Shown piece after piece: positions 2,571 to 43,363 of a stretch of DNA of 64,000 nt (positions are counted from its first letter, which is position 1; each line of letters opens with the position of its first letter). The stretch is taken from positions 186,001 to 250,000 of IMG/VR virus record IMGVR_UViG_3300020188_000808; one strand, given 5' to 3'. A program made the translations under genes and the position numbers. Under the pieces are notes generated by a model that did not search any database, was not told the origin of the DNA, and saw nothing but the letters and a program-made list of their open reading frames with translations.

Positions 2571-3523
2571 AATGTTACCCACTCCGTTTTGCCTAATATA
2601 TATAATGCCCATATAGCATGAAACGTTTCATTAGGATGAAATCCATTAAGACTGCTTGTCTTTAATAATTTGTTACTTGCTTCTAAATTATCTAACTGTT
2701 TCATCATATACTCTTGTTTACCTTCTACATTTCCGTATGTACTGTAATGCTCAGTCCACCAACCGGCTTCGTTAATTACAGGTAAATCAAAAACGTTACC
2801 ATGCATCTGTGAAGTTAATCTAACCCACGGACATGTTACTATTATAAACGATTCTGTATTAAAGTCAACCTGAAATGGATTAAAATTCTTCCAAACTAGA
2901 CCATTTACATTTGTATGTAATTTAAGAATTCGATCATATTCGGTTAACATCATTGTATCATATGCCTGAAACCATTCGGCATCAGTCATCTTGTTCGTTA
3001 ATGTTTGTTTAGTTGTATAAAGATTATCATAACCTTTTAACAATCTATGTTTATCTTCAATTTTAGATTGGTCTCTACCGGGACTAGTTAATTGTAATTG
3101 GACAAATACTTCTTCATAAAGAACAGAATATTCTTCAAGTAATCGATCTAAGTCTTGTAACATGTTTTGGTTACAGTTACCAGGAACTGCTGATAGTATT
3201 AGATCACTATCCAGCATTTTTGCACTATGACTTGCAAATGAATGATTGACTCTATATGTTATATTATCTCTACCAAGTCCGCTTTGTACACCTTGAAAGT
3301 TATCACCATAGGTCCAACTTTCACCTACAGAAATTAACAGTCTTGATTTTTTCTTGTTCTTAACATACACTTCTGTATTTCTAGCAGAAATCCAATCTGG
3401 TTTAGTTGGGCACTCACGAACCCATACACGAGTTCCTAAACTTTGTTGGATTATTCCGGGTGTATAACTATCTGACGGAAAGGTAACTTGTTCTACCCAT
3501 TTAGGATGCTTCACTTTTGCCAT
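2567..3523 (-). CDS. SGNH/GDSL-hydrolase-like hypothetical protein
   Basis: GESWTYG block-I-like motif, PGNCN, C-terminal GFHPN; likely start MAKVKH at 3523. Confidence 0.55.
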   Translation of the reverse strand: MAKVKHPKWVEQVTFPSDSYTPGIIQQSLGTRVWVRECPTKPDWISARNTEVYVKNKKKSRLLISVGESWTYGDNFQGVQSGLGRDNITYRVNHSFASHSAKMLDSDLILSAVPGNCNQNMLQDLDRLLEEYSVLYEEVFVQLQLTSPGRDQSKIEDKHRLLKGYDNLYTTKQTLTNKMTDAEWFQAYDTMMLTEYDRILKLHTNVNGLVWKNFNPFQVDFNTESFIIVTCPWVRLTSQMHGNVFDLPVINEAGWWTEHYSTYGNVEGKQEYMMKQLDNLEASNKLLKTSSLNGFHPNETFHAIWALYILGKTEWVTL

Positions 3524-3878
3524 CTTTTCTAGGAACAATTTTAATATGGCCAGCTTCTCTTTGCGGATCATGTCCTTGTTCTGTCAAAATTGTTCTAGCA
3601 ACATCTTTAAACCAACCGTCAATAATTTCTTCGTTTGTTTCACCTTTATATCCAACATCAAGTAACTGCTCAATAAACTCGTTATTCCAATCAAGTTCAA
3701 AGAAACCATTCTTAATATCTTTTGGATTAACTTGTGTATCTAATACACCAACCCAAGGTTTACCTGCTTTTGTTGCCTCAGCTTTTTCACGTTCCATAGC
3801 CTCTTTACTTGTAGGAGGAGTATTACCATCACTACTTGATTTAGACTTTGTAAACATAGTTTTTAGTTTTTCAATCAT
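3501..3878 (-). CDS. hypothetical phage protein
   Basis: 125-aa ORF with GGA SD. Confidence 0.7.
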   Translation of the reverse strand: MIEKLKTMFTKSKSSSDGNTPPTSKEAMEREKAEATKAGKPWVGVLDTQVNPKDIKNGFFELDWNNEFIEQLLDVGYKGETNEEIIDGWFKDVARTILTEQGHDPQREAGHIKIVPRKDGKSEAS

Positions 3879-3888
3879 AGTCTTTCCT

Positions 3889-3969
3889 TTATAGTAGACC
3901 TTTTTCTCTTAACTGTTCATCAAGAGGTCTAGTGTCTTTTGTTGCGTTGTGCTTCTTAACCTTTAACAT
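3889..3969 (-). CDS. possible 26-aa peptide (MLKVKKHNATKDTRPLDEQLREKGLL)
   Basis: Fills the gap directly after the queE stop; it is the 3' end of the track ORF 3889..4392. Confidence 0.35.
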   Translation of the reverse strand: MLKVKKHNATKDTRPLDEQLREKGLL

Positions 3970-3973
3970 TTCA

Positions 3974-4873
3974 TCAAGTTCCCCAGGCATTTCCGAATAA
4001 GCTGATGTGTAGTCTTGGAGTGAATCGCCATCCTTTTGCCATACACGCTTCAGCAACATCTTTAACGTTGAGGGAATATTCTTCACTGCGTCCACCCAAA
4101 GGCATAAGATATACTGGACATTGTACCCCGGCACTTCTGTAAGCCTCCACAGCTCTTTCAACTTCTTCAAAGTCGCCTTGAGTAGCGACAACAAACTTAA
4201 GATAGATGTCGCAATTAGTAATAGTACTATACTGACTAGCCACATCAGGCTTAATAGCAGTATCCCAAGGTTCTCCACTAACACTAAGTTTTGGGGAACA
4301 AGACCATGTAACTTTAATCCTGTCTTGATTGTTGAGATAGTCAAAGAAATCTTCGTGTAAAGTTTGCGTAGTGTTTGTTTCAAATGTAACATTTTTTAAG
4401 TCCTGCATACGTGGATGCTCGAATAATTCAATATATAATCGTTGCCATGCAAGTAATGGCTCGCCTCCGGTTAATATTAAATGGACATCTTGTCCATTGT
4501 CCTGTACCCACTTACCATTTGGAGTAAGTGAAAGTAAATGTTCAACAACAGCATCAACACCTGCTAGTTTATTAAAGTGTTTAAACTCAGGGTAGATACT
4601 TGCGTATGTATCACAACCTGTGTGTATAATAGGCAAGTCATTAAATTCTTTTGTAGTTTCGTGTACACCAGCATCAATCAATGCTTTAACTTCTGCATTG
4701 TGTTTTTTGCCGTCTTTGTGTTGTTCCCAACGATCACGTTTCTCATCTGTACCAAAGTTCATACAACGAAAATTACAACCAAATGTACGTAAGAACACAC
4801 TAGGTACTCCTACATATTGTCCTTCACCTTGTACACTATAAAATGCTTCTGAGTATCTAAGTTGAGCTGGCAT
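3974..4873 (-). CDS. queE: 7-carboxy-7-deazaguanine synthase (radical SAM)
   Basis: FYSVQGEG, VFLRTFGCNFRC, a later CDT cysteine, TGGEP, ETN, SPKL, C-terminal RLH. Confidence 0.92.
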   Translation of the reverse strand: MPAQLRYSEAFYSVQGEGQYVGVPSVFLRTFGCNFRCMNFGTDEKRDRWEQHKDGKKHNAEVKALIDAGVHETTKEFNDLPIIHTGCDTYASIYPEFKHFNKLAGVDAVVEHLLSLTPNGKWVQDNGQDVHLILTGGEPLLAWQRLYIELFEHPRMQDLKNVTFETNTTQTLHEDFFDYLNNQDRIKVTWSCSPKLSVSGEPWDTAIKPDVASQYSTITNCDIYLKFVVATQGDFEEVERAVEAYRSAGVQCPVYLMPLGGRSEEYSLNVKDVAEACMAKGWRFTPRLHISLFGNAWGT

Positions 4874-5061
4874 TATAATTCCTCCGCAATACCTAGTAAT
4901 TCAGCAATAAGAAATCCACTTGCAAGCCAAACAATACTACCAGTATACAATGCTATAGCACAAGCACCAATACGTAATGTGCTTTTTATAATACTAATAT
5001 AAAAATGTTTTTTATTAGGATCTCTAGGTTGTGGTACAAATACTCTTTCTGGAATAGGCAT
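4873..5061 (-). CDS. small membrane protein
   Basis: 62 aa with two hydrophobic segments; TAATG-coupled to queE. Confidence 0.6.
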   Translation of the reverse strand: MPIPERVFVPQPRDPNKKHFYISIIKSTLRIGACAIALYTGSIVWLASGFLIAELLGIAEEL

Positions 5062-5249
5062 TATGACACCACCTTAAGCAAAGGCTCAGTAGTCGTACTA
5101 TCATTATAGTCATCACCAAAGAACCTACGTACCGTTGTTTCTTTGCGTAGCATACCGTCTTTAACACGATACGTAATAAACTCTTGCTTAACAACTCCTG
5201 ACATATCGCCCAGGCTGTCAACTGCTGATTTTAATGGTCCGTCACTCAT
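5061..5249 (-). CDS. hypothetical protein
   Basis: 62-aa ORF translationally coupled on both sides. Confidence 0.6.
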   Translation of the reverse strand: MSDGPLKSAVDSLGDMSGVVKQEFITYRVKDGMLRKETTVRRFFGDDYNDSTTTEPLLKVVS

Positions 5250-5929
5250 TTTGAAAACTCCTGTTGTAATTTAATATTGTCCATAAATTCTTTTTTAGTA
5301 CCCGCATCTTCATTAAAAGCACCTTTAAGCACAGTTGTCTGTGTTAAACTGCTAGTTGCCATAATGCCTCTATTCTCACAACACCCATGTGTTGCCTGAA
5401 TATAAACACCTACGTTCTTTGAACCAGTTGCTTTCATAATCTCACGTGCGATATCATTACAAAGTTCTTCTTGTAGTGTACCACGTCTAGCACACCATTG
5501 TGCAATACGTGTGTATTTGCTTAAACCAATTAGTGTTTCAGCGGCAATAATACCAATGTATGCAATACCTGTTACTGGTTGATGATGATGTGAACACACA
5601 CTTTTAAGTTCTGAACGTACAACTAACATACCTTGATAACCATCATCTACATGATTAGGAAATGCAGTTGCATTAGGCATAGGATCATAACGTCCTGCCA
5701 TTAGTTCATTAATATACATTTTAGCAAGACGTCTACCAGTGTCCATACTGTTAGGATCATTTGCTCTATCAATTAATAAACTATCTAATACTGATTCAAA
5801 CTTAGGTGTAAGTTCTTCAATCAGTTCTTCTTTGTCGCCCTTCTGTAGGACTAAACTAATATTATCACCCGCCCAGTAACGTATGCCTTGTTCTTCTAGG
5901 CGAGCTTTAATTTGTTCACTTTTACTCAT
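5246..5929 (-). CDS. folE: GTP cyclohydrolase I
   Basis: SVCSHHHQP, GLSKYTR, LQEEL, HGCCENRG motifs. Confidence 0.95.
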   Translation of the reverse strand: MSKSEQIKARLEEQGIRYWAGDNISLVLQKGDKEELIEELTPKFESVLDSLLIDRANDPNSMDTGRRLAKMYINELMAGRYDPMPNATAFPNHVDDGYQGMLVVRSELKSVCSHHHQPVTGIAYIGIIAAETLIGLSKYTRIAQWCARRGTLQEELCNDIAREIMKATGSKNVGVYIQATHGCCENRGIMATSSLTQTTVLKGAFNEDAGTKKEFMDNIKLQQEFSK

Positions 5930-5973
5930 TTGTTTCTCCGATGTTAAGGCAGTGGATTGCCAAAGTTAGTATT

Positions 5974-6002
5974 ATTATATACTTTATTTAGGTTTTTGTC
6001 AA
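5974..6002 (-). promoter_or_regulatory. consensus sigma70 promoter TTGACA-N17-TATAAT upstream of folE
   Basis: Perfect -35/-10 read directly; the spacer also contains TAAATA. Confidence 0.85.
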
Positions 6003-6007
6003 TGACT

Positions 6008-6214
6008 TTAAGCACCAAAATGTTTGTCTAACATTTCAAGTCTGTCATTAGCAGTGGCCATTTTATCTAACTCTTTTTGAATTGTTTCGATAATATCTGA
6101 ATGCTCACCAATACCTACAACATTCTGCATATATACTTCGATGTTAGTCTTATGCAATTCAATCTCCGCTTCTGCGTGTTTCCTTGCCGCTTGTATCATT
6201 TGCTGTTTCAACAT
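6008..6214 (-). CDS. small hypothetical phage protein
   Basis: 68-aa helical ORF with a VGIGEHSDI motif. Confidence 0.7.
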   Translation of the reverse strand: MLKQQMIQAARKHAEAEIELHKTNIEVYMQNVVGIGEHSDIIETIQKELDKMATANDRLEMLDKHFGA

Positions 6215-6225
6215 AAAGTTCCTTT

Positions 6226-7074
6226 CTAAAATTGTGACGGCAAATACTCTGTAGCAATCATTTTATGAATCATTTCATCAAAATGCTCTCCGTCTACAGT
6301 ATAGTTGCCTACGTTGATATCTTTTTGTTGAAGAAACCAATCTTCAACGGTCGTCTTTGCTACTTGGATATAATTGAAATCAAAAAATTCTTTGTTCATT
6401 TCTTTTGGTATCCATGTCCAACTGTTTATTCCAAACAGTTTTACTTTAGCACCGTTGTTACGGCACAATTCTTGTATAATATATATCTCCTTAAACCACT
6501 CACGTTGTGCTTTAAGGCTCATAACTTCCATCCATGTTTTTACAGTCATGTATGGTTCATTTCTTAGATCAGGCTTTGCTAATTTAAAGTCTGGGTCGTA
6601 TACTGATTTAAAGGGTACTTCCTTTTGAAAGTCCATTGGCCAAACTTGCATTGGTATGTCATTAACACTACCGTCAGATGTTTGATTAGCAGGATACCAA
6701 CAGTCGATGCGTCCTTTTGTAAGTTCTTTAACATAGGTTGCATCTAGCGGTACAATGTTTTCATAGTGTGTAGGAAATTGAATACTTAATCTAAAACGAT
6801 TCCAGTAGGTCATTTGCACAACAACTTCTTCAATGTCGTCATATGTTTTAAACAAATGACTTAACCATTCTGAATAAGTCCACCAACCGTTTTGTGGATT
6901 AGCAAATATAACGCCGTCAGCATCTTTACTATTAATGTAATGTTCAGCCCAGTTGTTATCATTCCACTTACCACTATAAGGCCAGTGTTCTTGTGTCATG
7001 TCTTCTTTTGCTTCAGGCATATCACCAACGTGATATCCACTTGTATGACTACAACCTATAGCGGCAATTCTCAT
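6226..7074 (-). CDS. SGNH-like hypothetical protein
   Basis: N-terminal IGCSHTSG and C-terminal DGEHF. Confidence 0.55.
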   Translation of the reverse strand: MRIAAIGCSHTSGYHVGDMPEAKEDMTQEHWPYSGKWNDNNWAEHYINSKDADGVIFANPQNGWWTYSEWLSHLFKTYDDIEEVVVQMTYWNRFRLSIQFPTHYENIVPLDATYVKELTKGRIDCWYPANQTSDGSVNDIPMQVWPMDFQKEVPFKSVYDPDFKLAKPDLRNEPYMTVKTWMEVMSLKAQREWFKEIYIIQELCRNNGAKVKLFGINSWTWIPKEMNKEFFDFNYIQVAKTTVEDWFLQQKDINVGNYTVDGEHFDEMIHKMIATEYLPSQF

Positions 7075-7451
7075 GACTCGTAACTTTGTTTTGTAGGAAG
7101 AACACCACGAACACCACCTTTTGGATCGTCCATATCCCCGTCACGTCTAAAAATTAAATGTACATGTGGATACATACAAGTTTGTCCTGCACTCTTGCCT
7201 ATATTAATACCCATGTTGTAACCTGTAATATTATTGTTTTTACTTACAACATTTTCGTAGCCCATAGTAACACCATAATTAAAACATTTCATAATAGCTT
7301 CATGTGTGTTTTCACGTGGTACAATTAGTGTGTGTCCTTCTGTAACAGGATACTTGTCATTGTATACAACAAAGTCTCTTGTACTAATCTGTACATCGTT
7401 CCAAGGTGCTCTACCATCTGCTTGAGCTTGTTCTAAATTATCAACTTTCAT
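7071..7451 (-). CDS. HIT-family nucleotide hydrolase
   Basis: DKYPVTEGHTLIVP and GQTCMYPHVHLI (first His of the triad is Tyr); likely start MKVDN at 7451. Confidence 0.88.
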   Translation of the reverse strand: MKVDNLEQAQADGRAPWNDVQISTRDFVVYNDKYPVTEGHTLIVPRENTHEAIMKCFNYGVTMGYENVVSKNNNITGYNMGINIGKSAGQTCMYPHVHLIFRRDGDMDDPKGGVRGVLPTKQSYES

Positions 7452-8161
7452 TTTATACTCCATTTTGGATCACGTTTAATTAACTTCTTAGGTCTTAGTT
7501 TTAAGGCTCTAGTCATTAAATTAATTATACCACCTTTCTTAAAGTTTGTCAAATATCTTTTACGTTCTAATTCTTTAATCAGTTCATCTGTAAGTAAACA
7601 CTCTTCTAAACCGACCTTATTTGTCAAGTTAGTTGTTGTAAACTTAATGTAGCACAACGGGTCACCACGCTTAATAGACAGCTTAGATCGCGTATTATCA
7701 AAGATAAACCCCCAACTAGTAGTCCTTATCCACTTGTGTATATTAAAAGATCCACCAACAACTTCTCCAGGAAAGTTTTCGTTATGCATAAATGGCGGAA
7801 GTATTTCCATTAAGCAAGGCTCGTCTGCAACAAACAAATAATTTAAATTAAATTGAAATAATGGTTTTTTAACATCGTGCATATCTTCTTTAGGGTGTAT
7901 AGTAAACAAGTTATGTAATTGATGGTCATCAATTTCGTTAGATGTAACAACTACTATTCCGTCTTTAACTTCTGCATCAAACGACACAGGAGACTTTAAT
8001 AGAAACAAGTTGTTATAAAATCCTTGATATGAAGGACAATCAATAACACCACGCTTGTTGTAATCTTTGTTAACTACTTTTGGCGTTTTAAATCTTTCAG
8101 GTTCTATAACTAATAGATCAGGAATAGCACCTGCCCAACACCACCCTATATCAGCTGTCAT
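7448..8161 (-). CDS. hypothetical protein, possibly beta-rich dUTPase-like fold
   Basis: 237-aa ORF; CPxxxG and IKRGDPLC motifs resemble ORF 38479..39231. Confidence 0.55.
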   Translation of the reverse strand: MTADIGWCWAGAIPDLLVIEPERFKTPKVVNKDYNKRGVIDCPSYQGFYNNLFLLKSPVSFDAEVKDGIVVVTSNEIDDHQLHNLFTIHPKEDMHDVKKPLFQFNLNYLFVADEPCLMEILPPFMHNENFPGEVVGGSFNIHKWIRTTSWGFIFDNTRSKLSIKRGDPLCYIKFTTTNLTNKVGLEECLLTDELIKELERKRYLTNFKKGGIINLMTRALKLRPKKLIKRDPKWSIK

Positions 8162-8699
8162 ATTCGCCTACATTCTCCCAAGGATATACTAACCATACAT
8201 CATTTTCTTCTTTATTAATTTCGTGGCAAGTGTAATTTACGTCATGAAAAGTACTTGCTAGGTTTTCAGTGAGTGTAGCAAAGCGAACATTGTTACCCCA
8301 AACACGTTCCCATTTAGGATCGTTAGGTAAACAACTTGCTTGCCAGTCTTCTTTGATCCAATTGAATGTAGCACCAGTATCGTTGATATCATCTACAATA
8401 AGAATTTTCTTTTCTAATGGACCACCTGTAACTTTTAATGCATCATCACTTACATAACCATATGCATCTTCTGCCATCCAAAAGTTACTTTCTTGATGAC
8501 TTTCACTATCACGTAGACTTACTTTAATTGCTTCGCAACGAATGCCTGTCATGTTTGAAATAATAGTAGCAGGTACATTACCTCCACGTGTAATACCTAC
8601 AATATAATCAGGACGCCAATGGTCCTTATACATTTGATTTACAATATTAACGCACATGTTTTCTACGTCAGTCCAACTATAGTAATGTTTCTTAATCAT
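8151..8699 (-). CDS. type I phosphoribosyltransferase (purine PRTase-like)
   Basis: VGITRGG, PRPP-binding ILIVDDINDTGATF, C-terminal WLVYPWE. Confidence 0.9.
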   Translation of the reverse strand: MIKKHYYSWTDVENMCVNIVNQMYKDHWRPDYIVGITRGGNVPATIISNMTGIRCEAIKVSLRDSESHQESNFWMAEDAYGYVSDDALKVTGGPLEKKILIVDDINDTGATFNWIKEDWQASCLPNDPKWERVWGNNVRFATLTENLASTFHDVNYTCHEINKEENDVWLVYPWENVGEYDS

Positions 8700-9327
8700 T
8701 TTTGTTTCTCCAAGGGTATGTTTCTTTCATTGCTAACCTTAATGGTCCTTGTGTGTGTATTTCAGGATCAAAGGGTACAAATTTGATAGTAGGTGTAAAT
8801 CTGTGAAAGTCTTTGAAAGGAGTAGCAGTATGTAATATATTACTTTTGAAAATAATCATACGTCCTGGAATAGGAGGGATAGCAATAATTTCAGGATATG
8901 ATTGACCTTCAATAGTACCTTCGTGTTTAAGGTTAGTAATAAACTTTGTTTCACCACCTTGATTAATATCCCAGCTATTGTTTGCATAGAACATAAATGT
9001 CCATGCATTATCACCTTCGTCATCAATGTGATAGTTTGCTAATTCACGTGGTGCAAAGATGTTTGCATGTGATCTTTTTAATACTGATCCATGTACATGC
9101 GGTACATGTTCTTCTAAGAATGTCCAAAGACTGTTAAATGTTTTAGTACCTAAGTAATCTCCGGTACTCATTCCTGTTGGAGGCAAATCAACATCGTCAA
9201 CTTCACCGTAGAAATAATTCCAACTAGCGACTTCTGTTACTAGTTCATTTAGTTCAGGTGGTCCAAATACTTCATCATATATTTTAATATCACCATCTAA
9301 GTATTCTGTAATTTTAGGCTTATGCAT
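8692..9327 (-). CDS. 2OG-Fe(II) oxygenase
   Basis: HxD (YHIDD), GGET, distal His (ILHTA) and Arg. Confidence 0.85.
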   Translation of the reverse strand: MHKPKITEYLDGDIKIYDEVFGPPELNELVTEVASWNYFYGEVDDVDLPPTGMSTGDYLGTKTFNSLWTFLEEHVPHVHGSVLKRSHANIFAPRELANYHIDDEGDNAWTFMFYANNSWDINQGGETKFITNLKHEGTIEGQSYPEIIAIPPIPGRMIIFKSNILHTATPFKDFHRFTPTIKFVPFDPEIHTQGPLRLAMKETYPWRNKND

Positions 9328-9766
9328 CTTTCAAATAATCCCTATTATCAATCCACTTGCCATCTTTGACAAAGCCCCAGCTTTGTGCTTTTTTACCCAT
9401 AAAGAACAAACTCCAACATGGAATGTTATTGTTGTTCTTGTCTTTAGCAAGTTCTAACCAATGCAAATCTTTTGCACTTCTAAATCTAATATGTCCTGGC
9501 CCACGCCAAAACTTACCTTCAGGTGTATGTTCCCAATAGCCACCACTTAAAATAATAGCACCCCAACTCCATGGATGATCATGTAGTGTAGGTTCATCGC
9601 TTACAAGAACTTTGTGTAGTGTAATATTAAACGGAAAGTTTTTACGTTCTTTTAAAAATAGATAATAACGGATAAGGTAAGGTACCTTTCCGTCTCTGTC
9701 TGTAATTACTCGACGTCTTCCAAGTTTGTCCATAATCTTAGAAAGGAATGTCATCATCAAATTCAC
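9320..9766 (-). CDS. cupin-fold protein
   Basis: LHDHPW...GGYWE...LHWLEL metal-binding cupin pattern; true start probably 9757 or 9733. Confidence 0.65.
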   Translation of the reverse strand: MNLMMTFLSKIMDKLGRRRVITDRDGKVPYLIRYYLFLKERKNFPFNITLHKVLVSDEPTLHDHPWSWGAIILSGGYWEHTPEGKFWRGPGHIRFRSAKDLHWLELAKDKNNNNIPCWSLFFMGKKAQSWGFVKDGKWIDNRDYLKDA

Positions 9767-10118
9767 CTGCTTCTTTTTTACCTTTGTAATCTTGCTTAAC
9801 TAAATCATACATAGTTTTAAAATTATGCCAAACTATTTTTAGTGCTGGATACTCTTTACACATTTCTGTTATTTCATCTTCGTCTAATGTATTTAGGCCA
9901 ACGTCAGAAAAAAGTGTACTATTAATATCAATACTAGTAATTCCGCCTACTGTTGCACCTGACTGAAATGAGTCATCAAATGAATATGTAACGTCACTCA
10001 TTGTGTTATCAAGGATAAGCCCACTATCTGATGCACTACCAATAGTAATTGTACTTGTACTGCACTGATCGTCAGTACCAATAGTAATTGAATAGTCATC
10101 TTTGTCTTTATCATCCAT
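9738..10118 (-). CDS. acidic protein ending in an SSB-like tail (EFDDDIPF)
   Basis: AAGGA SD before the ATG at 10118; C-terminus read directly. Confidence 0.7.
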   Translation of the reverse strand: MDDKDKDDYSITIGTDDQCSTSTITIGSASDSGLILDNTMSDVTYSFDDSFQSGATVGGITSIDINSTLFSDVGLNTLDEDEITEMCKEYPALKIVWHNFKTMYDLVKQDYKGKKEAGEFDDDIPF

Positions 10119-11157
10119 TACTAATTCCTTTATATAAAGCTCGACCATCAAAGAACTCTTTCTTTAATAGATCTGTTTGTTTTAATAGTGCAGGCAAATA
10201 AGATTCATAATTTTCTACATAGTCAACTAACTGTGCAACTATTTTATCTTTATTAGCTTTGTAGCTTTCAAAAGATTCAGTCCACGCACTAGGATATTTA
10301 AATTTATCAATAGCCATTTCACTATAGCTTAGTCTATCAGGCACCATAGGAAGTGCATTTACTAATGCACCTTCATACCAACTAATGCCAAGTGTTTCTT
10401 GTAGGTTAGCACTAAACACTACTTTTGCTTCACCTAGCAAGTTATGATATTCGTTTTTACTTAATGTTTGTTCTTGACATACTACAAATTCGTATTCAGG
10501 AAGTTGCTCCGCTAAGTCACGGAATATGTCTACTTGCTTCTCCGGTGCTACACGATGTGGGAACAAGACCAAGTCTCGCTTCTGCATACCTTTGTAACTG
10601 TCTAAACTGTTACGCAAATACTCCATAGGCCAACCAACTCTGTGATTCTTGTTTGGATCCATACGTAAACTTTTTGCAAATAGATCAATATGGAATTGTG
10701 TAGCAAAATAGTTATCATCATAACATTCATACATAGAACGTTCTGCATGTCTTACCCAAGGTTTGTCGCCTATTAGTCTACCCAAGAAGTCATGTGGATC
10801 ATAGCTACCAGCATGCCACATACCACCAATGCGAATGTCAACACCCAATAGTTCTGCCATGTAGCGTAGTTGTATAACTGTAGGGTTCCAGGCATCGGTA
10901 TAAAGAAAATAATCACCGTCCTTAATAGTTCCTGCACAGAACATTTCTCCTATTTGTTCTAGTTGTTTACTTTTGTAAACGTTAGTACCACCAAAGTTGA
11001 GAAAAGCCCCAGGCGTTGTAGCCTGAGGCGTTTCCCCTCCACTAATAATCTTTACGTCCATATTTGTAGCACGTTGAAGTTGCTTTGGAAGATATTCTTT
11101 CCATTGCTTAGTATAACGGGTATCTACTGCTTCAATGTCTACAATGTACGTTGTCAT
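10111..11157 (-). CDS. GT-B glycosyltransferase (GT4-like)
   Basis: MWHAG in the N-terminal domain; FPHRVAPEKQ and QETLGISWYEG (EX7E-like) in the C-terminal domain. Confidence 0.8.
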   Translation of the reverse strand: MTTYIVDIEAVDTRYTKQWKEYLPKQLQRATNMDVKIISGGETPQATTPGAFLNFGGTNVYKSKQLEQIGEMFCAGTIKDGDYFLYTDAWNPTVIQLRYMAELLGVDIRIGGMWHAGSYDPHDFLGRLIGDKPWVRHAERSMYECYDDNYFATQFHIDLFAKSLRMDPNKNHRVGWPMEYLRNSLDSYKGMQKRDLVLFPHRVAPEKQVDIFRDLAEQLPEYEFVVCQEQTLSKNEYHNLLGEAKVVFSANLQETLGISWYEGALVNALPMVPDRLSYSEMAIDKFKYPSAWTESFESYKANKDKIVAQLVDYVENYESYLPALLKQTDLLKKEFFDGRALYKGISNG

Positions 11158-11375
11158 TAGTTAGGTTTCCTATTCCGGGTAAACTTACCCTTATTCTTAT
11201 TATCACGATTCTTCCTCAATTTGGAAGGATCTAAATAGAATTGCCATGCTCGGCTATTCTTGTTGTACAAATCTTTTTCATCGAACTTAAAACCGTAGTT
11301 ACGACAAAAAACACGGAACTTATCCAAGTCATCAAAAATTTTGATAATCTCAGGCTTTTCTTCCCAGTACGACAT
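11157..11375 (-). CDS. small basic hypothetical protein
   Basis: 72 aa, GGAG SD, TAATG-coupled to the glycosyltransferase. Confidence 0.65.
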   Translation of the reverse strand: MSYWEEKPEIIKIFDDLDKFRVFCRNYGFKFDEKDLYNKNSRAWQFYLDPSKLRKNRDNKNKGKFTRNRKPN

Positions 11376-11387
11376 TGCTTTACTCCT

Positions 11388-11846
11388 TTAGCTTTTTGCA
11401 TACTCAATATGTGCGCCGTTTTCTCCATCTTCACTAATGTCAATATGAATCTCACGACCGGGGTATTTAGCATTGATCTTTTGGTACAGATCGTCTGCCA
11501 TCATCTCACAACTTTTATAATCTACATTTAGTTCACCTTCATATAGTTTCATTAACCATCGTTTAAATTGAATAAATTCGATATCTCTGTCGTTGTGTGT
11601 TACAGTGATAGCGACCTTAAAATGGAATATGTGTCTGTGGGGATATCCCAAAAACGAAACATCATATTCGTCACCTGTTGCAAGACTAGGATCATCTAGT
11701 GCCGCAGGATACTTATGGATACCTTCTTTAGTAAAAGTAACCCAAATCATTCTTTTTGCGTTGTTCATAAGATCTTTCATGTTTTCTTCTTTAGTCCTTC
11801 TCATCATATAATCATGATGTGATTCGTAGTTGTTATTTGTACTCAT
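11388..11846 (-). CDS. QueD-paralog T-fold protein, candidate CDG decarboxylase (DpdL-like)
   Basis: LGYPHRHIF (LxxxHRHxF) instead of the QueD CxxxHGH motif; DRDIEF and SCEMMA T-fold motifs; true start likely a later Met because the promoter abuts 11846. Confidence 0.75.
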   Translation of the reverse strand: MSTNNNYESHHDYMMRRTKEENMKDLMNNAKRMIWVTFTKEGIHKYPAALDDPSLATGDEYDVSFLGYPHRHIFHFKVAITVTHNDRDIEFIQFKRWLMKLYEGELNVDYKSCEMMADDLYQKINAKYPGREIHIDISEDGENGAHIEYAKS

Positions 11847-11875
11847 AGTATACTATCTTTCGTCCTCATTGTCAA
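11847..11875 (-). promoter_or_regulatory. sigma70 promoter TTGACA-N17-TATACT
   Basis: Read directly; the -35 and spacer lie in the 3' end of the upstream gene. Confidence 0.75.
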
Positions 11876-12401
11876 CCGGATTATCGTTTTCATATTTGGA
11901 CCAATCTGTAAATTTTGAACGGTCTTGTAAGTCATGTACTTGATGAATCCAAACTCCAGCATTAGATGCCTTAAAGTCTTTGTCATCAATTTTAATACAA
12001 GCATTATAGTTTAGTAGATCAATGTAAGGAAGTTTAACACTAATTTGGCTAATAAATTTATTATCTTCGTTGTACCCTGCTTCTATAACATACTCATGAT
12101 ATTTTACATCATAGTCTAATGTAACCATATAACCTTCTTTAAGCAAACCATGTACAAGTGTATCCCATGCCTTGTTAGTAGCATCGTCACCGTGTGGTAA
12201 TTTTATTTGAAAACTTTGATTAGCACCAAGATAGATATGATCAACGTGATGCTTGTGTGCTTGTTCGAGAACTTCATCTAATGGAGGACATCCTACGACA
12301 AATAGTGTATCCATTTCAAATGCTGGTGTTTTTTCTACTTCATAACCAGTAAAGTATACTACATCATCTTTAACTACACCATCTGAATAATCACGTTTCA
12401 T
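11853..12401 (-). CDS. hypothetical protein within the deazaguanine cluster
   Basis: 182-aa ORF; VDHIYLGANQSF and IKIDDKDF segments; family not recognised. Confidence 0.75.
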   Translation of the reverse strand: MKRDYSDGVVKDDVVYFTGYEVEKTPAFEMDTLFVVGCPPLDEVLEQAHKHHVDHIYLGANQSFQIKLPHGDDATNKAWDTLVHGLLKEGYMVTLDYDVKYHEYVIEAGYNEDNKFISQISVKLPYIDLLNYNACIKIDDKDFKASNAGVWIHQVHDLQDRSKFTDWSKYENDNPVDNEDER

Positions 12402-12579
12402 TTTTTGTTAACCTATCAATTTGATCTTTAATTACTAATTTCATTTTTTTAAGTTTTGTTAATAGGGCTTTATGTCCAAAGTCTCTATACATTGTACGTT
12501 CTTTTTCAATCTCGTCAACTTTTTTTGCATAGAATTTATGCTCTTCGGTTAATTTTTTTACAAGTTTTTTTTGTTTCAT
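12391..12579 (-). CDS. small basic coiled-coil protein (DUF465-like)
   Basis: 62 aa, LKKMKLVIKDQI pattern. Confidence 0.55.
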   Translation of the reverse strand: MKQKKLVKKLTEEHKFYAKKVDEIEKERTMYRDFGHKALLTKLKKMKLVIKDQIDRLTKNET

Positions 12580-12584
12580 AATAT

Positions 12585-12613
12585 ATTATAGCACTATAAT
12601 GACTTGTCGTCAA
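12585..12613 (-). promoter_or_regulatory. sigma70 promoter TTGACG-N17-TATAAT
   Basis: Read directly. Confidence 0.75.
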
Positions 12614-13199
12614 GTGCTTCTCCTCCTAAATTGCCATTAAATGCTATTGATATACGTGATGTATTGCTCGTATTATCTCCAACACTATGATTGATCCAAC
12701 CCGGAAAACATACAAGATCACCATCTTTTGGCATCACTGTGTATCTTGTTCCGTTAAAGGGAGTTGGAATTTTGGTTAGTTTATATGGTAATGCATAGTC
12801 CATTAGTCCATGCGGACTAGAAAGAACAAGATTACCACCTTCTGCGGGCGCCTTTACGTAGTATACAGCTGACATAATATGTCCTGGGTGCATATGCATG
12901 TCATTAGTATTAGACCTGCTTGTATTAGGCTTATTAACGTTAATCCAAGCCTGTGTTACTTCTATACGGCAGTTGTCAACAAGTCCTAATAGTTCTGCTT
13001 GTTTATCAAACAATGCTTGTACACGAGCTACAAGAGGTTGCAATATTACGTTAGTAAGATCAAGATGCATACTTTGCCAGTTGTCATTTGTACCTTCTGC
13101 ACTATACAGGCCATGACAAAATGCATACAACGTATCGTTGCTTAGTTCGTTAGCATGTTCATACAAGAAGGGCGTTGCAAAAAGCGATTCTGTATGCAT
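12594..13199 (-). CDS. putative 2OG-Fe(II) oxygenase (TIGR02466-like)
   Basis: HMHPG, SAVYYV, FPGWINHSV, RISIAFN. Confidence 0.85.
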   Translation of the reverse strand: MHTESLFATPFLYEHANELSNDTLYAFCHGLYSAEGTNDNWQSMHLDLTNVILQPLVARVQALFDKQAELLGLVDNCRIEVTQAWINVNKPNTSRSNTNDMHMHPGHIMSAVYYVKAPAEGGNLVLSSPHGLMDYALPYKLTKIPTPFNGTRYTVMPKDGDLVCFPGWINHSVGDNTSNTSRISIAFNGNLGGEALDDKSL

Positions 13200-13208
13200 T
13201 AATAACTC

Positions 13209-14741
13209 CTATAAATTCTCTTCTAAGTTATCTAACTTATCTTCTGATAGTTCAGGTTCGTCTACTGTTGCTGTGTTAGTATCTTCAACTTCAAACAAGT
13301 TTCCAAAGTGTGTACTTGCGTTTACAGTCTTTTTACCTGTTGCACCACGTGTTCCAATAATGGTCATAAAAAACTTTGAATTGTCTTCTATGATTTTGTT
13401 CGCTTTGTCTCTGTCGTCAGTTGCAAATATTGCCTCCACAACATCTCGGAAAAATACCCTGTCAAAACGCTCTTCCACAAGCATGTTCGGAACGACTCCA
13501 TTGTCGTATTGTCTATTCGCTTCTTGTACTGCATTAATATGACTCCATACATTATGACCCATTTGGATCGCATATGAAAAACTATCCCAAGATGTTTTTC
13601 CTTCTTTACCTATTTTATTTAAATCACCAGGTGCATAAATTGTAACATCTTTGGCTTTTAAATCTTGTGTAATAGGTGAATCTTTAAAACTAGTATGTTT
13701 ACCTTCTCTAACAAATGCCTGTCCAAACGGAGTAGTGTCTGTTGCTAGTGCTTTGTTGTCGATACTAGGAACCATTCTATACACCCATTTACTTCTATCC
13801 TGTGTTTCTAATTCACAATATATTTGACCGTTTGCTGTTGCTAAAAATGGAGAAGCACAATCAAATGTAATCATAAAGTTAGGGTTGTGATACTTACGCA
13901 CCGCACGTTGGATATCAGTTAATAGTGTAGCCCACTCCAATTTACTTGTACCTAAGAAGTGCATTACATCATGTAAGCCTGTTTGTAATAGTCCGTCAAA
14001 CCTTAATGCAACTAGACGTTTAAGAACCAAATGCACATCACACATGTTCTGTCCACCCATACTCCAACCATTAAAATGTGTATCAGGATACTTGGCTGGA
14101 TCACAATAGTCTTTCATCTGTTGATACCAATCTTCAGCATCAGCATGATTTTCACCTTGTAGTACGTTTAGGAATTTACAAGCACCACTTCTATTTTTCA
14201 TAAAGAAGTCATTGTTAATACGTGTAGCATTAACGGCATCTTGATAGTTGTCAATACCTGTTGCTTTAGCACCTTCAGGTGAACGTGCCACCCAGGCAGG
14301 GATATCAAGGATCATACCATAGTCCATGTAAGCATCCATCCATGCAAGAACTTGTGTACGTTTTTTCATTGCTTTAGGACAGTTAGGATTCTTCCAGTCG
14401 CCTTCCCAAACACCTTTACCAATTTGGAAACCACCTGAGTCACCAAGTAGCCAACTAGTAGTACGATCTCTGTTACGGATCATATCTTCTTTAGGTGAGT
14501 CCTTGTTGATATCAAGTTCGGCATGTCCTGCTGAATACAAACTCCAATGGTATTGAAACTGTCCGTCTTTACGGTTTAACCAATTAAGACTTTCAACACC
14601 GTTCTTAAAGTTTGCAGGAATACGATTGTATTCTACATATTCGCCTGCTCTTTGTTTACCAACAAACGTAGCATAGAAGCCACTTAGTGCTGGTAAGAAC
14701 GTTGCGTAATCGTTCTGTGCTTTTGTTAAGTCGGTATTCAA
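13209..14741 (-). CDS. dpdA: tRNA-guanine-transglycosylase-like DNA 7-deazaguanine transglycosylase (DpdA/DpdA2-like)
   Basis: TGT motifs in the correct order: DSGGFQ, LDIP, VLQG, MGG, HFLG, FDCAS; clustered with folE, queE and the QueD paralog. Confidence 0.8.
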   Translation of the reverse strand: MNTDLTKAQNDYATFLPALSGFYATFVGKQRAGEYVEYNRIPANFKNGVESLNWLNRKDGQFQYHWSLYSAGHAELDINKDSPKEDMIRNRDRTTSWLLGDSGGFQIGKGVWEGDWKNPNCPKAMKKRTQVLAWMDAYMDYGMILDIPAWVARSPEGAKATGIDNYQDAVNATRINNDFFMKNRSGACKFLNVLQGENHADAEDWYQQMKDYCDPAKYPDTHFNGWSMGGQNMCDVHLVLKRLVALRFDGLLQTGLHDVMHFLGTSKLEWATLLTDIQRAVRKYHNPNFMITFDCASPFLATANGQIYCELETQDRSKWVYRMVPSIDNKALATDTTPFGQAFVREGKHTSFKDSPITQDLKAKDVTIYAPGDLNKIGKEGKTSWDSFSYAIQMGHNVWSHINAVQEANRQYDNGVVPNMLVEERFDRVFFRDVVEAIFATDDRDKANKIIEDNSKFFMTIIGTRGATGKKTVNASTHFGNLFEVEDTNTATVDEPELSEDKLDNLEENL

Positions 14742-14960: not shown

Positions 14961-15692
14961 TTACTTAGTTTGTGCTGGTAGAATATAGTCGTACTGACCT
15001 AAACCACTGTCAACACTTAATGCCATTGCACCTTGATCACTAATCTTCATAGTTACTTTACCATCAAGATTTAAAATAGCTTGTACTTGTGCTACAGGCC
15101 AACTCCAAGCATGTTTCAATTCACTGCCAACTCCGTGTTGGAATACAAATGATCCTGCGTGTTGTGAAGCGTCACCAAAAGTAAACACTAAGTTATCATT
15201 TTCAGTCTTAACTGTAAATGTAGTTTCTTCTGAATGTGCCGCACTTTGCAATTTCATTCTAGTAATTGAAGCCATTGTAGGCTCAATGGTTACGTCCCAA
15301 CTTGCACCTTTAAACTTAACAGTTTTAAGTTTCTCATCAATAATTGCTTTATTCATAAAGCGATAATCGTTTTCAAAGTCACCTGCTTCGTTTTCAAAGT
15401 GTAAGTGTGTTGGCAAAGTTTCGCCGTCTTTTTCTCTAGACTCTACAGTAATCTTTGCTTGTTTTTGATACTCAGGATTCTTTAAGTGTAGTGCTAACTT
15501 GTCTAAGTTAGGCATACCAAAGGTTCCTTTAAATTCGTTTACTGCCGCCTTTGTTGTAGCAGTTAAGATAACACTTCTATCTTCTGCCATTGATTCGATT
15601 GTCGTTGCGGCATCTTCACCAGTAACTTTTACTAAAGTTAAAAATCCTAGTGAATGTGTATGAGCAACAACGTCTTGTAAGATATCTTTCAT
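14961..15692 (-). CDS. sliding clamp (T4 gp45-like)
   Basis: 243 aa, alpha/beta repeat pattern, FGMPNLDKL segment, located near PolB. Confidence 0.7.
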   Translation of the reverse strand: MKDILQDVVAHTHSLGFLTLVKVTGEDAATTIESMAEDRSVILTATTKAAVNEFKGTFGMPNLDKLALHLKNPEYQKQAKITVESREKDGETLPTHLHFENEAGDFENDYRFMNKAIIDEKLKTVKFKGASWDVTIEPTMASITRMKLQSAAHSEETTFTVKTENDNLVFTFGDASQHAGSFVFQHGVGSELKHAWSWPVAQVQAILNLDGKVTMKISDQGAMALSVDSGLGQYDYILPAQTK

Positions 15693-15707: not shown

Positions 15708-16475
15708 TTAGTTATATACATTATATTTAGGTTTTTCTAAAAAGTCAAGCTCTTTCTTGTCTTTTAAGAATTGTATTAGCTCAATTGTTGTTTTCCAACC
15801 CAAGCCTTGTAACACTGATATGTCAGCAACATTATCAGCTCTTTCATTGGGAGTATCCATTTTCATTTGTGGATTCATTCCAAATTCTTTTAAAATACTT
15901 TTTAGTGATTGGCTTTTGCCAGTTCCGATATCAATAACTCCTCTTACATCTTCGTTTTTGATTAATGTAAGTATTGCACTTACAATATCGGCAACATGAA
16001 TAAAGTCTCTTTTATGATTAGTTACGTGTGGTACATCATTGCGTATAATTCGAGGTATTAACATGTTTGGCCTAAGTTCTGAGTTGTTACTGTATATAGT
16101 TGTAAATCTCATGCCTAGACTTGATTGTGGTGCAATGCGTTCAACTGTATGTTTAGTTAATGCATACGGATTTCTATTAGGTTCTTTTGCAGTACTTGAA
16201 CTAGCATACAGTATTCTAGTATTTTTAAAATGGTCAAATAATCTTTTAGTTGCTAGTACGTTATGTTGAAAATACAAATCAGGTTCTTCTAAACTTCTTA
16301 GTATTCCGCTTTCGCCTGCAAGATGAATTACTAGATCAACATCGAAGTCTAACGAACAGTCTAGTAAGTTATTACCGTCTTTTAAATCAATACCAATAAC
16401 ACGATGGTCTTTGGTTAGAGCAGTATACAACTCTGTTCCAACCATACCTTTATGTCCTGTTAGTAGTATCCTCAT
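15708..16475 (-). CDS. NAD-dependent epimerase/dehydratase (extended SDR)
   Basis: LTGHKGMVG Rossmann motif, HLAG, ASSS, YALTK (YxxxK), RDFIHV. Confidence 0.9.
   Translation of the reverse strand: MRILLTGHKGMVGTELYTALTKDHRVIGIDLKDGNNLLDCSLDFDVDLVIHLAGESGILRSLEEPDLYFQHNVLATKRLFDHFKNTRILYASSSTAKEPNRNPYALTKHTVERIAPQSSLGMRFTTIYSNNSELRPNMLIPRIIRNDVPHVTNHKRDFIHVADIVSAILTLIKNEDVRGVIDIGTGKSQSLKSILKEFGMNPQMKMDTPNERADNVADISVLQGLGWKTTIELIQFLKDKKELDFLEKPKYNVYN
15720..15748 (-). promoter_or_regulatory. sigma70 promoter TTGACT-N17-TATAAT upstream of clamp and dpdA
   Basis: Read directly; inside the epimerase 3' end. Confidence 0.75.
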
Positions 16476-39904: not shown

Positions 39905-40052
39905 TTTTTAATTCCTTTGTTCGATGTTCTAACCAATTAATGGCTGTGTGTATATGTCCTGTATCATGTTCACGTAAACAAGATTTTGCATATTCAATTT
40001 CACGTTCTAATATAGTAACTGCTATTAGGTTACCGGGAAAGTCTTTTTTCAC
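39864..40052 (-). CDS. small hypothetical protein
   Basis: GGAGG SD before a GTG at 40052 that overlaps the parvulin stop. Confidence 0.55.
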   Translation of the reverse strand: MKKDFPGNLIAVTILEREIEYAKSCLREHDTGHIHTAINWLEHRTKELKNEGQTSKLLKSNG

Positions 40053-43336: not shown

Positions 43337-43363
43337 AAGGTATTCCTCTTCTTTTTTAAAGTG

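Follow-up and report, generated by a model that had tools for sequence, protein, structure and literature searches.

Gene content of the deazaguanine cluster

The region analysed here (the window) is a 64,000-nucleotide stretch, positions 186,001 to 250,000, of the IMG/VR record IMGVR_UViG_3300020188_000808, a marine or salt-marsh jumbo phage related to Pseudomonas phage PA5oct. Between positions 3974 and 14741 it carries, on the minus strand, a set of genes for 7-deazaguanine synthesis and for its exchange into DNA, interleaved with a glycosyltransferase and several further enzymes. The gene content listed in the original prediction, made from the sequence alone, is confirmed by our analysis.

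Two genes belong to the early steps of the pathway. A QueE-like radical SAM enzyme (CDG synthase; 3974-4873) matches PHROG 2076 (2.6e-50) and yields partial hits to five NCBIfam QueE models, all below their curated cut-offs; it is 34% identical to the homolog of Vibrio phage 2.275.O, and up to 77% identical to proteins encoded next to QueD in sister loci. GTP cyclohydrolase I (FolE; 5246-5929) is identified by PF01227 (7.8e-38, above the gathering score) and NF006824 (3.8e-40), and is 66% identical to FolE of phage Phosso.

The T-fold protein (11388-11846) carries the motif LGYPHRHIF, found once in the window, at 11651, and corresponds to DpdL, a QueD paralog and proposed CDG decarboxylase. 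In tblastn searches it matches ACP17 gp125 (51% identity, 7e-33) and phiST CGPG_00067 (32%, 8e-10), the two named DpdL proteins (PMC10516641), and it is 54% identical to PA5oct gp166. Our own profile comparison of DpdL with QueD was, however, weak (40% probability). The DpdA-like DNA-guanine transglycosylase (13209-14741; 510 aa) belongs to a jumbo-phage subfamily without Pfam coverage: it possesses a DSGGFQ motif but has no Pfam or NCBIfam hit. Nevertheless, D101 and D294 (the latter in TFDCASP, compare MFDCVMP in Tgt) are invariant in 45 diverse homologs, and profile-profile comparison (hhalign) links its family to E. coli Tgt plus the DpdA of phages X1 and ACP17 (96.9%, E 1.9e-10). Its Atlas neighbours include TGT and DpdA clusters, and it is 36% identical to PA5oct gp168.

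The glycosyltransferase (10111-11157; 348 aa) has no Pfam hit, but its AlphaFold2 model (pLDDT 86) matches retaining GT-B enzymes of the GT4 type in the PDB, namely GlgM, BshA, glycogen synthase, MshA and PimA (Foldseek probability 1.0, TM 0.6-0.67). Residues R202, K207, E254 and E262 (an E-x7-E spacing) are invariant. Between it and DpdL lies a 72-aa basic ORF (11157-11375; pI 9.8), present in most related loci. On the other side of DpdL, a 182-aa protein (11853-12401) is predicted by AlphaFold2 (pLDDT 85) to adopt a fold with no PDB or BFVD match except ACP17 gp122, of which it is also a sequence homolog (31%, 1.4e-15); a further homolog is a gene in L088.

The remaining genes include a HIT-family nucleotide hydrolase/transferase (7071-7463; PF01230, 1.8e-07; HinT-like, 2.1e-10), a type I phosphoribosyltransferase (8151-8699; PF00156, 9.7e-11) whose best NCBIfam match, xanthine PRTase (4.8e-11), indicates a Gpt-like purine PRTase, and a cupin-like protein (9320-9766; PHROG 4786, 7.9e-36) with no PDB sequence match. 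Two 2OG-Fe(II) oxygenases are encoded at 8692-9327 (PF13640, 9.3e-08) and 12594-13199 (TIGR02466 type; PF13759, 6.7e-21), the latter having a paralog at 20787-21326. Outside these limits, two genes upstream of dpdA, lies an NAD-dependent sugar epimerase/dehydratase-like SDR (15708-16475, minus strand; PF01370, 2.2e-23; PF16363, 8e-16), a possible supplier of the sugar donor, which is present in many close relatives. Further away, a cytidylyltransferase-like nucleotidyltransferase (41862-42371, minus strand; PF01467, 4.8e-12) is 58% identical to a gene located between FolE and QueD in L296, a locus of a sister lineage.

Absence of QueC, QueF and canonical QueD

The original prediction further held that QueC, QueF, ArcS and a canonical QueD are missing from the window. 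No SGGxDS motif occurs in any frame, and CxxxHGH is found only in the plus-strand frames, which are not the coding strand, with one of the two matches interrupted by a stop codon. Searches with phage QueC, QueD, QueF and Gat (tblastn and phmmer --max), and with an HMM built from six phage QueDs, gave nothing better than E 0.05. ArcS was not searched with a profile of its own; Pfam scans of about 95 ORFs, one of them only partial, showed none. QueC is likewise absent from 120 DpdL-anchored IMG/VR loci and from 20 MAG loci, which matches the published DpdL rule (PMC10516641).

The lack of QueD holds for the window and for 10 kb on either side in 80 close relatives. Conversely, sister clades and cultured relatives do encode a canonical QueD, either within the block or 100 kb or more away, and a 64-kb piece of a jumbo genome does not show that the gene is absent from the whole. 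The QueD of the window's clade is therefore elsewhere in the genome or host-supplied.

Conservation of the glycosyltransferase and of its neighbours

Co-occurrence of the glycosyltransferase with dpdA across related phages had been put forward in advance as a test of its involvement, and the two do co-occur, although the glycosyltransferase is tied more tightly to DpdL than to any one DpdA subfamily. Of the 22 phage records with a homolog of this enzyme, 17 have DpdL within a few kb (the PA5oct group, Phosso, ACP17, X1/BUDD and BCSR5), and the two genes are neighbours in PA5oct, Phosso, ACP17, X1 and BCSR5. Among 36 IMG/VR loci with at least 3 kb on both sides of DpdL, 34 have a homolog within 3.5 kb, and 14 of 15 MAG loci longer than 5 kb have one 0-2 kb downstream of DpdL. 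However, the IMG/VR and MAG loci form one broad DpdL clade (a single cluster at 70% identity), so that much of this co-occurrence is inherited rather than independent.

The linkage survives rearrangement and gene replacement. The glycosyltransferase stays next to DpdL when DpdA is unlinked (Phosso) and when DpdA is of another subfamily (ACP17, X1). In L296, a non-orthologous glycosyltransferase fills the same position, the 72-aa ORF is retained in its own position (57% identity), and the cluster includes a second glycosyltransferase, an SDR epimerase, a nucleotidyltransferase, IMPDH and QueD. SDR epimerases sit beside the glycosyltransferase in L296 and in four MAG loci. The 182-aa protein travels with the same genes and is found in 29 of the 36 DpdL loci, making it a core partner of DpdL, DpdA and the glycosyltransferase.

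The other genes are less constant. The cupin-like protein is present in 18 of the 36 loci, the PRTase in 17, and the HIT protein in most close relatives but in only 9 of the 36 broader loci. The PRTase nevertheless lies next to QueD and QueE in sister lineages, in about 35 of 80 QueD-anchored loci. As for the oxygenases, the one at 12594-13199 occurs in about 10 of the 80 closest loci, the one at 8692-9327 in about half of close relatives, mostly at 36-38% identity, and each is found in only 2 of the 36 broader loci. At least four such genes are scattered over the window, suggesting that the two in the cluster are variable accessory genes and probably not part of the module. The 182-aa partner, the Gpt-like nature and consistent linkage of the PRTase, the epimerase, and the sharing of the module by PA5oct-type phages had not been recognized in the original prediction.

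Relationship to known systems

The closest characterized counterpart is the DpdL-type dDG system of Cellulophaga phage phiST (FolE, QueD, QueE, DpdL and DpdA3; PMC10516641). Both possess FolE, QueE and a DpdL homolog with the LxxxHRHxF motif, lack QueC, have a TGT-superfamily transglycosylase nearby and are located next to the replication genes. The transglycosylases belong to different subfamilies (510 aa here against 259 aa; hhalign to DpdA3 gives only 71% over 85 columns). The GT4 glycosyltransferase and the 182-aa protein, integral to the module here, are absent from phiST. In addition, QueD is not in the window's cluster, PRTase, HIT and cupin genes are added, and MazG is not adjacent (42923-43336).

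The cluster of PA5oct (gp162-gp168; noted in PMC7824862) shows the same gene order, namely DNA polymerase, clamp-like protein, DpdA-like protein, glycosyltransferase, DpdL, then QueE and the exonuclease, with 36-54% protein identity, and QueD is encoded elsewhere in that genome (gp230). PA5oct has no FolE in this stretch and only a weak PRTase-like gene (gp163), its DpdL motif reads HFH instead of HRH, and the HIT, cupin and oxygenase genes are additions of the window. PA5oct DNA resists cleavage at G-containing restriction sites and is hit by END nucleases specific for modified G (PMC12191111), although the chemical identity of this modification is also unidentified.

The tRNA queuosine glycosyltransferases QTMAN and QTGAL offer a further comparison (10.64898/2026.06.28.735034; PMC12518689). 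QTMAN-family proteins carry the Glycos_transf_1 domain and put a sugar on a 7-deazaguanine derivative already in a nucleic acid, and QTMAN-family clusters are among the structural neighbours of the Atlas cluster closest to the window protein (TM 0.75-0.78). Generic GT4 enzymes are, however, equally close or closer structural matches, and the window protein has no QTMAN_N domain and no detectable sequence relationship. Moreover, the QTMAN acceptor is the cyclopentenediol of queuosine, which this pathway cannot make, and its substrate is tRNA, not DNA. In T-even phages, phage-encoded GT-B enzymes glucosylate hydroxymethylcytosine after replication, and relatives differ in which glycosyltransferases they carry (PMC13216743). 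Here the base would be a purine analogue rather than a pyrimidine, no hydroxymethyl handle is evident, and no T4 glucosyltransferase appeared among the listed Foldseek matches.

A putative pathway to a glycosylated 7-deazaguanine

Taken together, the interpretation originally proposed is only partly supported. A 7-deazaguanine DNA-modification cluster of the known QueC-free, DpdL type, with dDG (or dCDG) rather than dPreQ0 as the expected core product, is supported, as is the association of the glycosyltransferase with it; participation of the oxygenases is not. In our view, FolE, a QueD not encoded in the window, and QueE turn GTP into 7-carboxy-7-deazaguanine (CDG), which is established chemistry for these families; DpdL would then convert CDG to 7-deazaguanine, as published but not proven; and the DpdA-like protein would exchange this base for guanine in phage DNA, as we infer from its conserved catalytic aspartates and gene context.

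What is new compared with the described DpdL route is a GT4-type glycosyltransferase which, together with the 182-aa protein, is a conserved member of the DpdL/DpdA module. We infer that it most likely transfers a sugar from a nucleotide-sugar onto the deazaguanine, either on the free base before insertion or on DNA afterwards, so that the final base may carry a sugar, which has not been described for a purine in DNA. The Gpt-like PRTase most likely returns the guanine released by base exchange to the GMP/GTP pool feeding FolE, which is equally an inference; IMPDH sits in the sister cluster.

We consider this reading plausible but unproven, with a probability of about 0.5, and no chemistry has been measured for any phage carrying the glycosyltransferase. 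Co-expression of dpdL and dpdA from ACP17 without the intervening genes gave no dDG in E. coli, and the authors suggested that missing enzymes could be one reason (PMC10516641); however, the phiST dpdL plus dpdA reconstitution also failed, so this failure does not single out the glycosyltransferase. dDG has no oxygen or nitrogen substituent at C7 to accept a sugar, leaving the acceptor atom unidentified.

Alternative interpretations

A less likely but possible alternative is that the final base is plain dDG, and that the glycosyltransferase and the 182-aa protein are helpers or do something else, for instance by making a transient sugar-linked or otherwise activated intermediate, stabilising DpdA or DpdL, or modifying a non-DNA target while merely sharing the early/replication operon. 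Indeed, phiST reaches 100% dDG without a glycosyltransferase (Table 1 of PMC10516641), and Ahp1 and RHph_I1_18 also lack one near DpdL. The lack of an obvious acceptor atom and the largely single-clade co-occurrence point the same way, as does the acidity of the glycosyltransferases (pI 5.4-5.7), which does not suggest DNA binding, although the DpdA-like protein is acidic too. Conversely, the enzyme stays beside DpdL in different phage families and with different DpdA types, its catalytic residues are invariant, and its replacement by a non-orthologous glycosyltransferase, with a second one and a sugar epimerase added, is a pattern typical of diversifying sugar decoration.

A nucleotide-level route appears unlikely. 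In this view the PRTase would convert the deazaguanine base (DG or CDG) with PRPP into a nucleotide, as ToyH and TubE do in toyocamycin and tubercidin biosynthesis, and the modified dNTP would be incorporated during replication, so that DpdA would not be the main entry point. The linkage of the PRTase to QueD and QueE, and the presence of HIT, an NT5C-like nucleotidase, MazG and IMPDH-type nucleotide enzymes in the window or in sister clusters, are compatible with this. However, a DpdA-like protein with both catalytic aspartates is conserved in 34 of the 36 loci, whereas the PRTase is missing from about half of them.

The original scheme, in which a co-clustered 2OG-Fe(II) oxygenase hydroxylates the deazaguanine and the glycosyltransferase then glycosylates that hydroxyl, is more doubtful still. 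Two oxygenases do lie between dpdA and queE, and the chemistry would provide an acceptor, but neither was detected in the PA5oct, ACP17, Phosso, X1 or L296 loci compared, and their scattered distribution is that expected of common marine-phage accessory genes; the scheme therefore lacks its first enzyme in most carriers of the glycosyltransferase. Finally, synthesis of a small-molecule pterin glycoside by FolE, the PTPS-like T-fold protein and the adjacent GT4 enzyme, as in cyanobacterial biopterin glucoside synthesis, is the least likely reading, since, although T-fold enzymes bind pterins (PMC10516641), no sepiapterin-reductase-like gene was seen in the cluster, the trio is embedded with QueE and a DNA transglycosylase in almost every locus, and PA5oct DNA is itself G-modified (PMC12191111).

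Gene content of the region

All genes in the first 20 kb are located on the minus strand, at about 36 % G+C. Reading downstream from a family-B DNA polymerase (17155-19824), we find an Rv2179c-type exonuclease, a short NAD-dependent sugar epimerase/dehydratase-like protein (15708-16475), a clamp-like protein (14961-15692), a 510-aa DpdA-like protein (13209-14741), a 2OG oxygenase (12594-13199), a 182-aa unknown protein (11853-12401), a putative T-fold protein (11388-11846), a 72-aa ORF, a 348-aa protein (10111-11157), an acidic ORF, a cupin-like protein (9320-9766), a second 2OG oxygenase (8692-9327), a PRTase (8151-8699), an unknown ORF, a HIT protein (7071-7463), another unknown ORF, FolE (5246-5929) and QueE (3974-4873), with a 5'-3' exonuclease further on. 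The genes listed in the original prediction are therefore all present, and the observation on which it rested is confirmed. The QueE assignment relies on a full-length match to PHROG 2076 (2.6e-50), whereas the NCBIfam QueE models hit only in part and below their cut-offs, and the Radical_SAM Pfam hit is below the gathering score. A 167-aa ORF (3889-4392) that overlaps queE in another frame has no family hit and looks spurious.

The polymerase is a single intact 889-aa ORF here, but is split by a homing-endonuclease gene in PA5oct (locus L001, 8605-13831) and around an intein-like ORF in the metagenome relative L086 (3822-7543). The clamp-like protein (PHROG 12062), which always follows the polymerase and precedes dpdA, is annotated as a 'structural protein' in PA5oct (gp170, with ESI-MS/MS evidence) but as 'sliding clamp beta' in Phosso.

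QueC, QueF and canonical QueD, which the original prediction had already reported as missing, are absent from the 64 kb, as is Gat-QueC: no SGGxDS motif occurs in any frame, CxxxHGH occurs only in the non-coding + strand frames, and tblastn and unfiltered phmmer or HMM searches with phage QueC, QueD, QueF and Gat found nothing better than E 0.05. A megablast search of the region against GenBank phages likewise returned no match.

Proteins not recognised by family libraries

Pfam and NCBIfam do not recognise the DpdA-like protein, the predicted glycosyltransferase, DpdL or the 182-aa protein, and single-sequence and profile searches of PDB with these four proteins and with the cupin gave only chance hits.

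The putative T-fold protein carries the signature LxxxHRHxF in place of the QueD motif CxxxHGH: LGYPHRHIF occurs once in the window and is conserved in 14 homologs, PA5oct having HFH. By tblastn the protein is homologous to ACP17 gp125 (51 % identity, 7e-33) and phiST CGPG_00067 (32 %, 8e-10), with 85-88 % of the query covered; these are the two proteins that Hutinet et al. named DpdL (PMC10516641). Its relationship to the PTPS/QueD T-fold was less tractable, since there was no Pfam PTPS hit, no PDB hit with the family profile, and only a 40 % probability over the C-terminal 43 columns when it was compared by hhalign with six phage QueDs. This weak match neither establishes nor excludes the link, and the published HHpred result (99.9 %) is for the phiST protein (PMC10516641). 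The gene context is similarly equivocal for the DpdL assignment, in that DpdA, FolE and QueE are present and QueC is absent, but QueD is found only in sister clades and cultured relatives. CDG decarboxylase activity was not assayed here; it is also unproven in the literature, where heterologous expression failed (PMC10516641).

Neither the 510-aa protein nor 44 diverse homologs hit the Pfam models TGT (PF01702) or DpdA (PF23859) at E <= 0.01, and the family profile had no sequence hit in PDB. Nevertheless, the family profile aligns with E. coli Tgt plus two phage DpdA proteins at 96.9 % probability (E 1.9e-10, 176 columns), and its feature and structure neighbours in the Atlas are TGT and DpdA clusters. 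Both catalytic aspartates, D101 and D294, are invariant in 45 diverse homologs; hhalign aligns the DSGGFQ region with that of Tgt, while the correspondence of TFDCASP to MFDCVMP is by sequence inspection. The protein is not close to the DpdA3 subfamily of phiST and Campylobacter phages: to phiST CGPG_00065 there was no tblastn or phmmer hit and only a 71 % hhalign probability over 85 columns, and the window protein is twice as long. Members of this subfamily also occur next to QueC and QueF in other phages. In L086 (10001-15340), for example, a 42-44 % identical DpdA-like gene sits beside QueC, with a Cas12f/TnpB-like gene nearby. The subfamily therefore also serves preQ0-type pathways and is not tied to one base.

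The 348-aa protein is predicted with confidence to fold into a GT-B enzyme with two Rossmann domains (AlphaFold2 pLDDT 86, pTM 0.85) that most resembles retaining GT4 glycosyltransferases: Foldseek gave 86 PDB hits at E <= 0.001, of which the top ones are GT4 enzymes, with TM up to 0.67. R202, K207, E254 and E262 are invariant in 31-32 homologs, although their assignment to the Arg/Lys pair and the E-x7-E motif is by inspection. With respect to Pfam Glycos_transf_1 the picture is mixed and does not settle membership, as the window protein has no hit, the X1 homolog scores 45.5 bits, above the cut-off, and the ACP17 and L296 glycosyltransferases (L296 being a 269 kb contig of a sister lineage) hit weakly. 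The glycosyltransferase partner in Vibrio phage 2.275.O, which we considered as a possible homolog, is not homologous to this one. For the 182-aa protein an Atlas search was uninformative, and its confident structural model has no fold match apart from ACP17 gp122.

Conservation of the module

The window comes from a very abundant uncultured lineage. A search with the glycosyltransferase scored at least 8000 metagenome proteins, all at E <= 0.001, the best hits including Tara Oceans sequences and contigs up to 405 kb. Sequencing runs place the window in salt-marsh metagenomes, and the region is also present in metatranscriptome contigs, although these do not separate transcription from carried-over DNA and carry no information on modification. 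Contigs from several salt-marsh runs, both metagenome and metatranscriptome, break at the same places inside the glycosyltransferase and dpdA genes (about 10367-10470 and 14028-14060); the loose ends differ in sequence, which suggests strain-level variants or recombination points.

Across the 80 closest IMG/VR loci, DpdA, the 182-aa protein, DpdL, the 72-aa ORF, the glycosyltransferase, PRTase, FolE and QueE are conserved, and HIT and the cupin are usually present. Conversely, oxygenase 12594-13199 is absent from most loci and oxygenase 8692-9327 from about half, and ORFs 7448-8161, 6226-7074 and 2567-3571 are also variable. We then drew an independent sample of 120 loci using a DpdL peptide pattern and retained the 36 with at least 3 kb on both sides of DpdL. 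Of these 36, 34 have the glycosyltransferase within 3.5 kb, 34 have a DpdA of this subfamily, 29 the 182-aa protein, 25 FolE, 18 the cupin, 17 the PRTase, 8 QueD, 2 each of the 2OG oxygenases, and none QueC. Co-occurrence of the glycosyltransferase with dpdA in related phages had been set out in advance as a criterion for the proposed tailoring, and these counts satisfy it.

The original prediction had also suggested a possible tailoring role for the co-clustered 2OG-Fe(II) oxygenases, and this is not supported: besides their rarity among the 36 loci, neither was detected in the loci of the cultured relatives compared. Moreover, at least four such genes (8692-9327, 12594-13199, 20787-21326 and 42253-42879) are scattered over the window, those at 12594-13199 and 20787-21326 being paralogs (31 % identity). 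We conclude that the oxygenases are accessory genes unrelated to the pathway.

The 36 loci form one broad DpdL clade, so their agreement is largely inherited; however, five further observations on the link between the glycosyltransferase and DpdL do not depend on that clade. First, in GenBank phages the glycosyltransferase family occurs in 22 records, in 17 of which DpdL lies within a few kb (the PA5oct group, Phosso, ACP17, X1/BUDD and BCSR5). Second, in ACP17 and X1 the partner DpdA is of another subfamily that does not match the window's protein by phmmer. Third, in Phosso the DpdA-like gene lies 170 kb away, while DpdL and the glycosyltransferase are still adjacent. Fourth, in the syntenic sister lineage L296 a non-orthologous Glycos_transf_1 protein fills the position after DpdL, and that cluster also contains IMPDH, FolE, a nucleotidyltransferase, QueD, the PRTase, QueE, a second glycosyltransferase and an SDR epimerase/dehydratase. 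Fifth, in MAG-binned phage contigs, 14 of 15 loci longer than 5 kb carry one of these glycosyltransferase types 0-2 kb downstream of DpdL, four of them with an epimerase beside it. For the MAG contigs (L298-L317), DpdL of this type was found only in MAG contigs, whose labels are mutually inconsistent (Rickettsiales, Methanobacteriota, Phycisphaerae, Neomarinimicrobiota, Nitrosotalea and others); they are most likely phage contigs binned by mistake, so the labels give no host information.

By contrast, DpdL occurs without a detectable nearby glycosyltransferase in the phiST group, Ahp1 and RHph_I1_18. In one further relative, L088 (DpdA 34 %, DpdL 51 %, the 182-aa protein present), the gene right after dpdA is a Methyltransf_24-type methyltransferase (6395-7147) and no glycosyltransferase lies in the 6 kb seen, which may represent a different tailoring variant.

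Location of QueD

Cultured relatives encode a canonical QueD far from the cluster: in Phosso it is at 372 kb against 150 kb for the cluster, in X1 at 172 kb against 72 kb, and in PA5oct it is gp230 (PMC12191111). Sister clades carry it inside the same syntenic block, either between the PRTase and QueE (for example L353, a sister locus whose QueE is 77 % identical to the window's), or after the exonuclease, or between the nucleotidyltransferase and the PRTase. The window and all 80 closest loci lack it in these positions, and it was not found in +-10 kb of those 80 loci. The window's clade therefore keeps QueD elsewhere in a large genome or uses the host enzyme, two alternatives that sequence extending only +-10 kb does not separate. 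Two QueD-anchored scans and one DpdL pattern scan of IMG/VR, intended to link QueD to a dpdA/dpdL contig by contig name, found no shared contig, but did show QueD inside the block in sister clades. The possibility that DpdL substitutes for QueD was rejected, because sister loci carry both genes.

Proposed pathway and possible role of the glycosyltransferase

It is established for the families concerned that FolE, QueD and QueE convert GTP to CDG, and that QueC is needed to go on to preQ0. That DpdL decarboxylates CDG to 7-deazaguanine has been published but is unproven, and only phiST-type phages, which lack the glycosyltransferase, have been shown by mass spectrometry to contain dDG (Table 1 of PMC10516641). 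The remaining steps are inferred here: the DpdA-like enzyme would exchange the base into DNA, the glycosyltransferase would add a sugar to the deazaguanine before or after insertion, and the Gpt-like PRTase, with IMPDH in the sister lineage, would recycle released guanine into the GTP that FolE consumes. The interpretation offered originally is partly supported, in that the glycosyltransferase belongs to the module and the oxygenases do not.

No acceptor atom for the sugar has been identified. Plain dDG offers only the pyrrole carbon or ring and exocyclic nitrogens, while CDG offers a carboxylate; isoelectric points, computed in order to guess whether the acceptor is DNA or a small molecule, did not discriminate. 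Two published experiments fit an extra step. PA5oct DNA resists several G-containing restriction sites and is targeted by nucleases specific for modified G, yet the modification has not been identified (PMC12191111). In addition, co-expression of ACP17 dpdL and dpdA alone gave no dDG (PMC10516641), but the same failed for phiST, so this is weak evidence.

It is possible, with a probability that we would put at roughly 0.4, that phages carrying the DpdA, glycosyltransferase, DpdL and 182-aa module replace guanine with a sugar-bearing 7-deazaguanine, for instance one in which the sugar is attached to the pyrrole C7 that DpdL unmasks by decarboxylation. Different lineages would then vary the sugar by swapping or adding glycosyltransferases and sugar-nucleotide enzymes, much as T-even phages vary the glycosylation of hydroxymethylcytosine. 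To our knowledge this would be the first glycosylated purine-type base in DNA, and it would be widespread in marine, soil and clinical jumbo phages, including PA5oct. A sugar-bearing G analogue would affect which restriction, END-nuclease and glycosylase defences can see these phages, as well as the behaviour of their DNA in sequencing and cloning.

Relation to described systems

The core of the cluster is a member of the DpdL branch of phage 7-deazaguanine systems, and the PA5oct system had already been noted (PMC7824862). 7-Deazaguanine DNA modifications are a major phage counter-defence, and the published list of derivatives (PMC10516641) contains no glycosylated one; nor did we find, in the library searched, a paper that links a glycosyltransferase to these clusters. 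What is new is that a glycosyltransferase is an integral, conserved part of the DpdL branch, which points to an uncharacterised step and possibly to a new class of DNA base, and may also help explain why dpdL plus dpdA alone could not be reconstituted. The product is unidentified, but the module exists in cultured phages (PA5oct, ACP17, X1/BUDD, BCSR5 and Phosso), of which PA5oct has therapeutic interest. The nearest functional analogy is glycosylation of queuosine in tRNA by QTMAN, whose family carries the Glycos_transf_1 domain. However, the window protein lacks the QTMAN_N domain (PF12038) and is no closer to QTMAN than to other GT4 enzymes, the resemblance being at the level of a fold shared with all GT4 enzymes.

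Other genes of the window

A set of auxiliary genes is present (23169-24059, 30415-31771, 37759-38478, 39224-40705 and 42923-43810), comprising an NT5C-like nucleotidase, peptide deformylase, DnaJ, PhoH (the one annotated + strand gene noted), ThyX, a PPIase, a 4Fe-4S ferredoxin, MazG and a Cpn10-like protein. The ferredoxin could serve radical-SAM QueE, a role that was not examined. Finally, two adjacent large proteins (50879-52501 and 52528-54978) are paralogs, with 35 % identity over about 530 aa.
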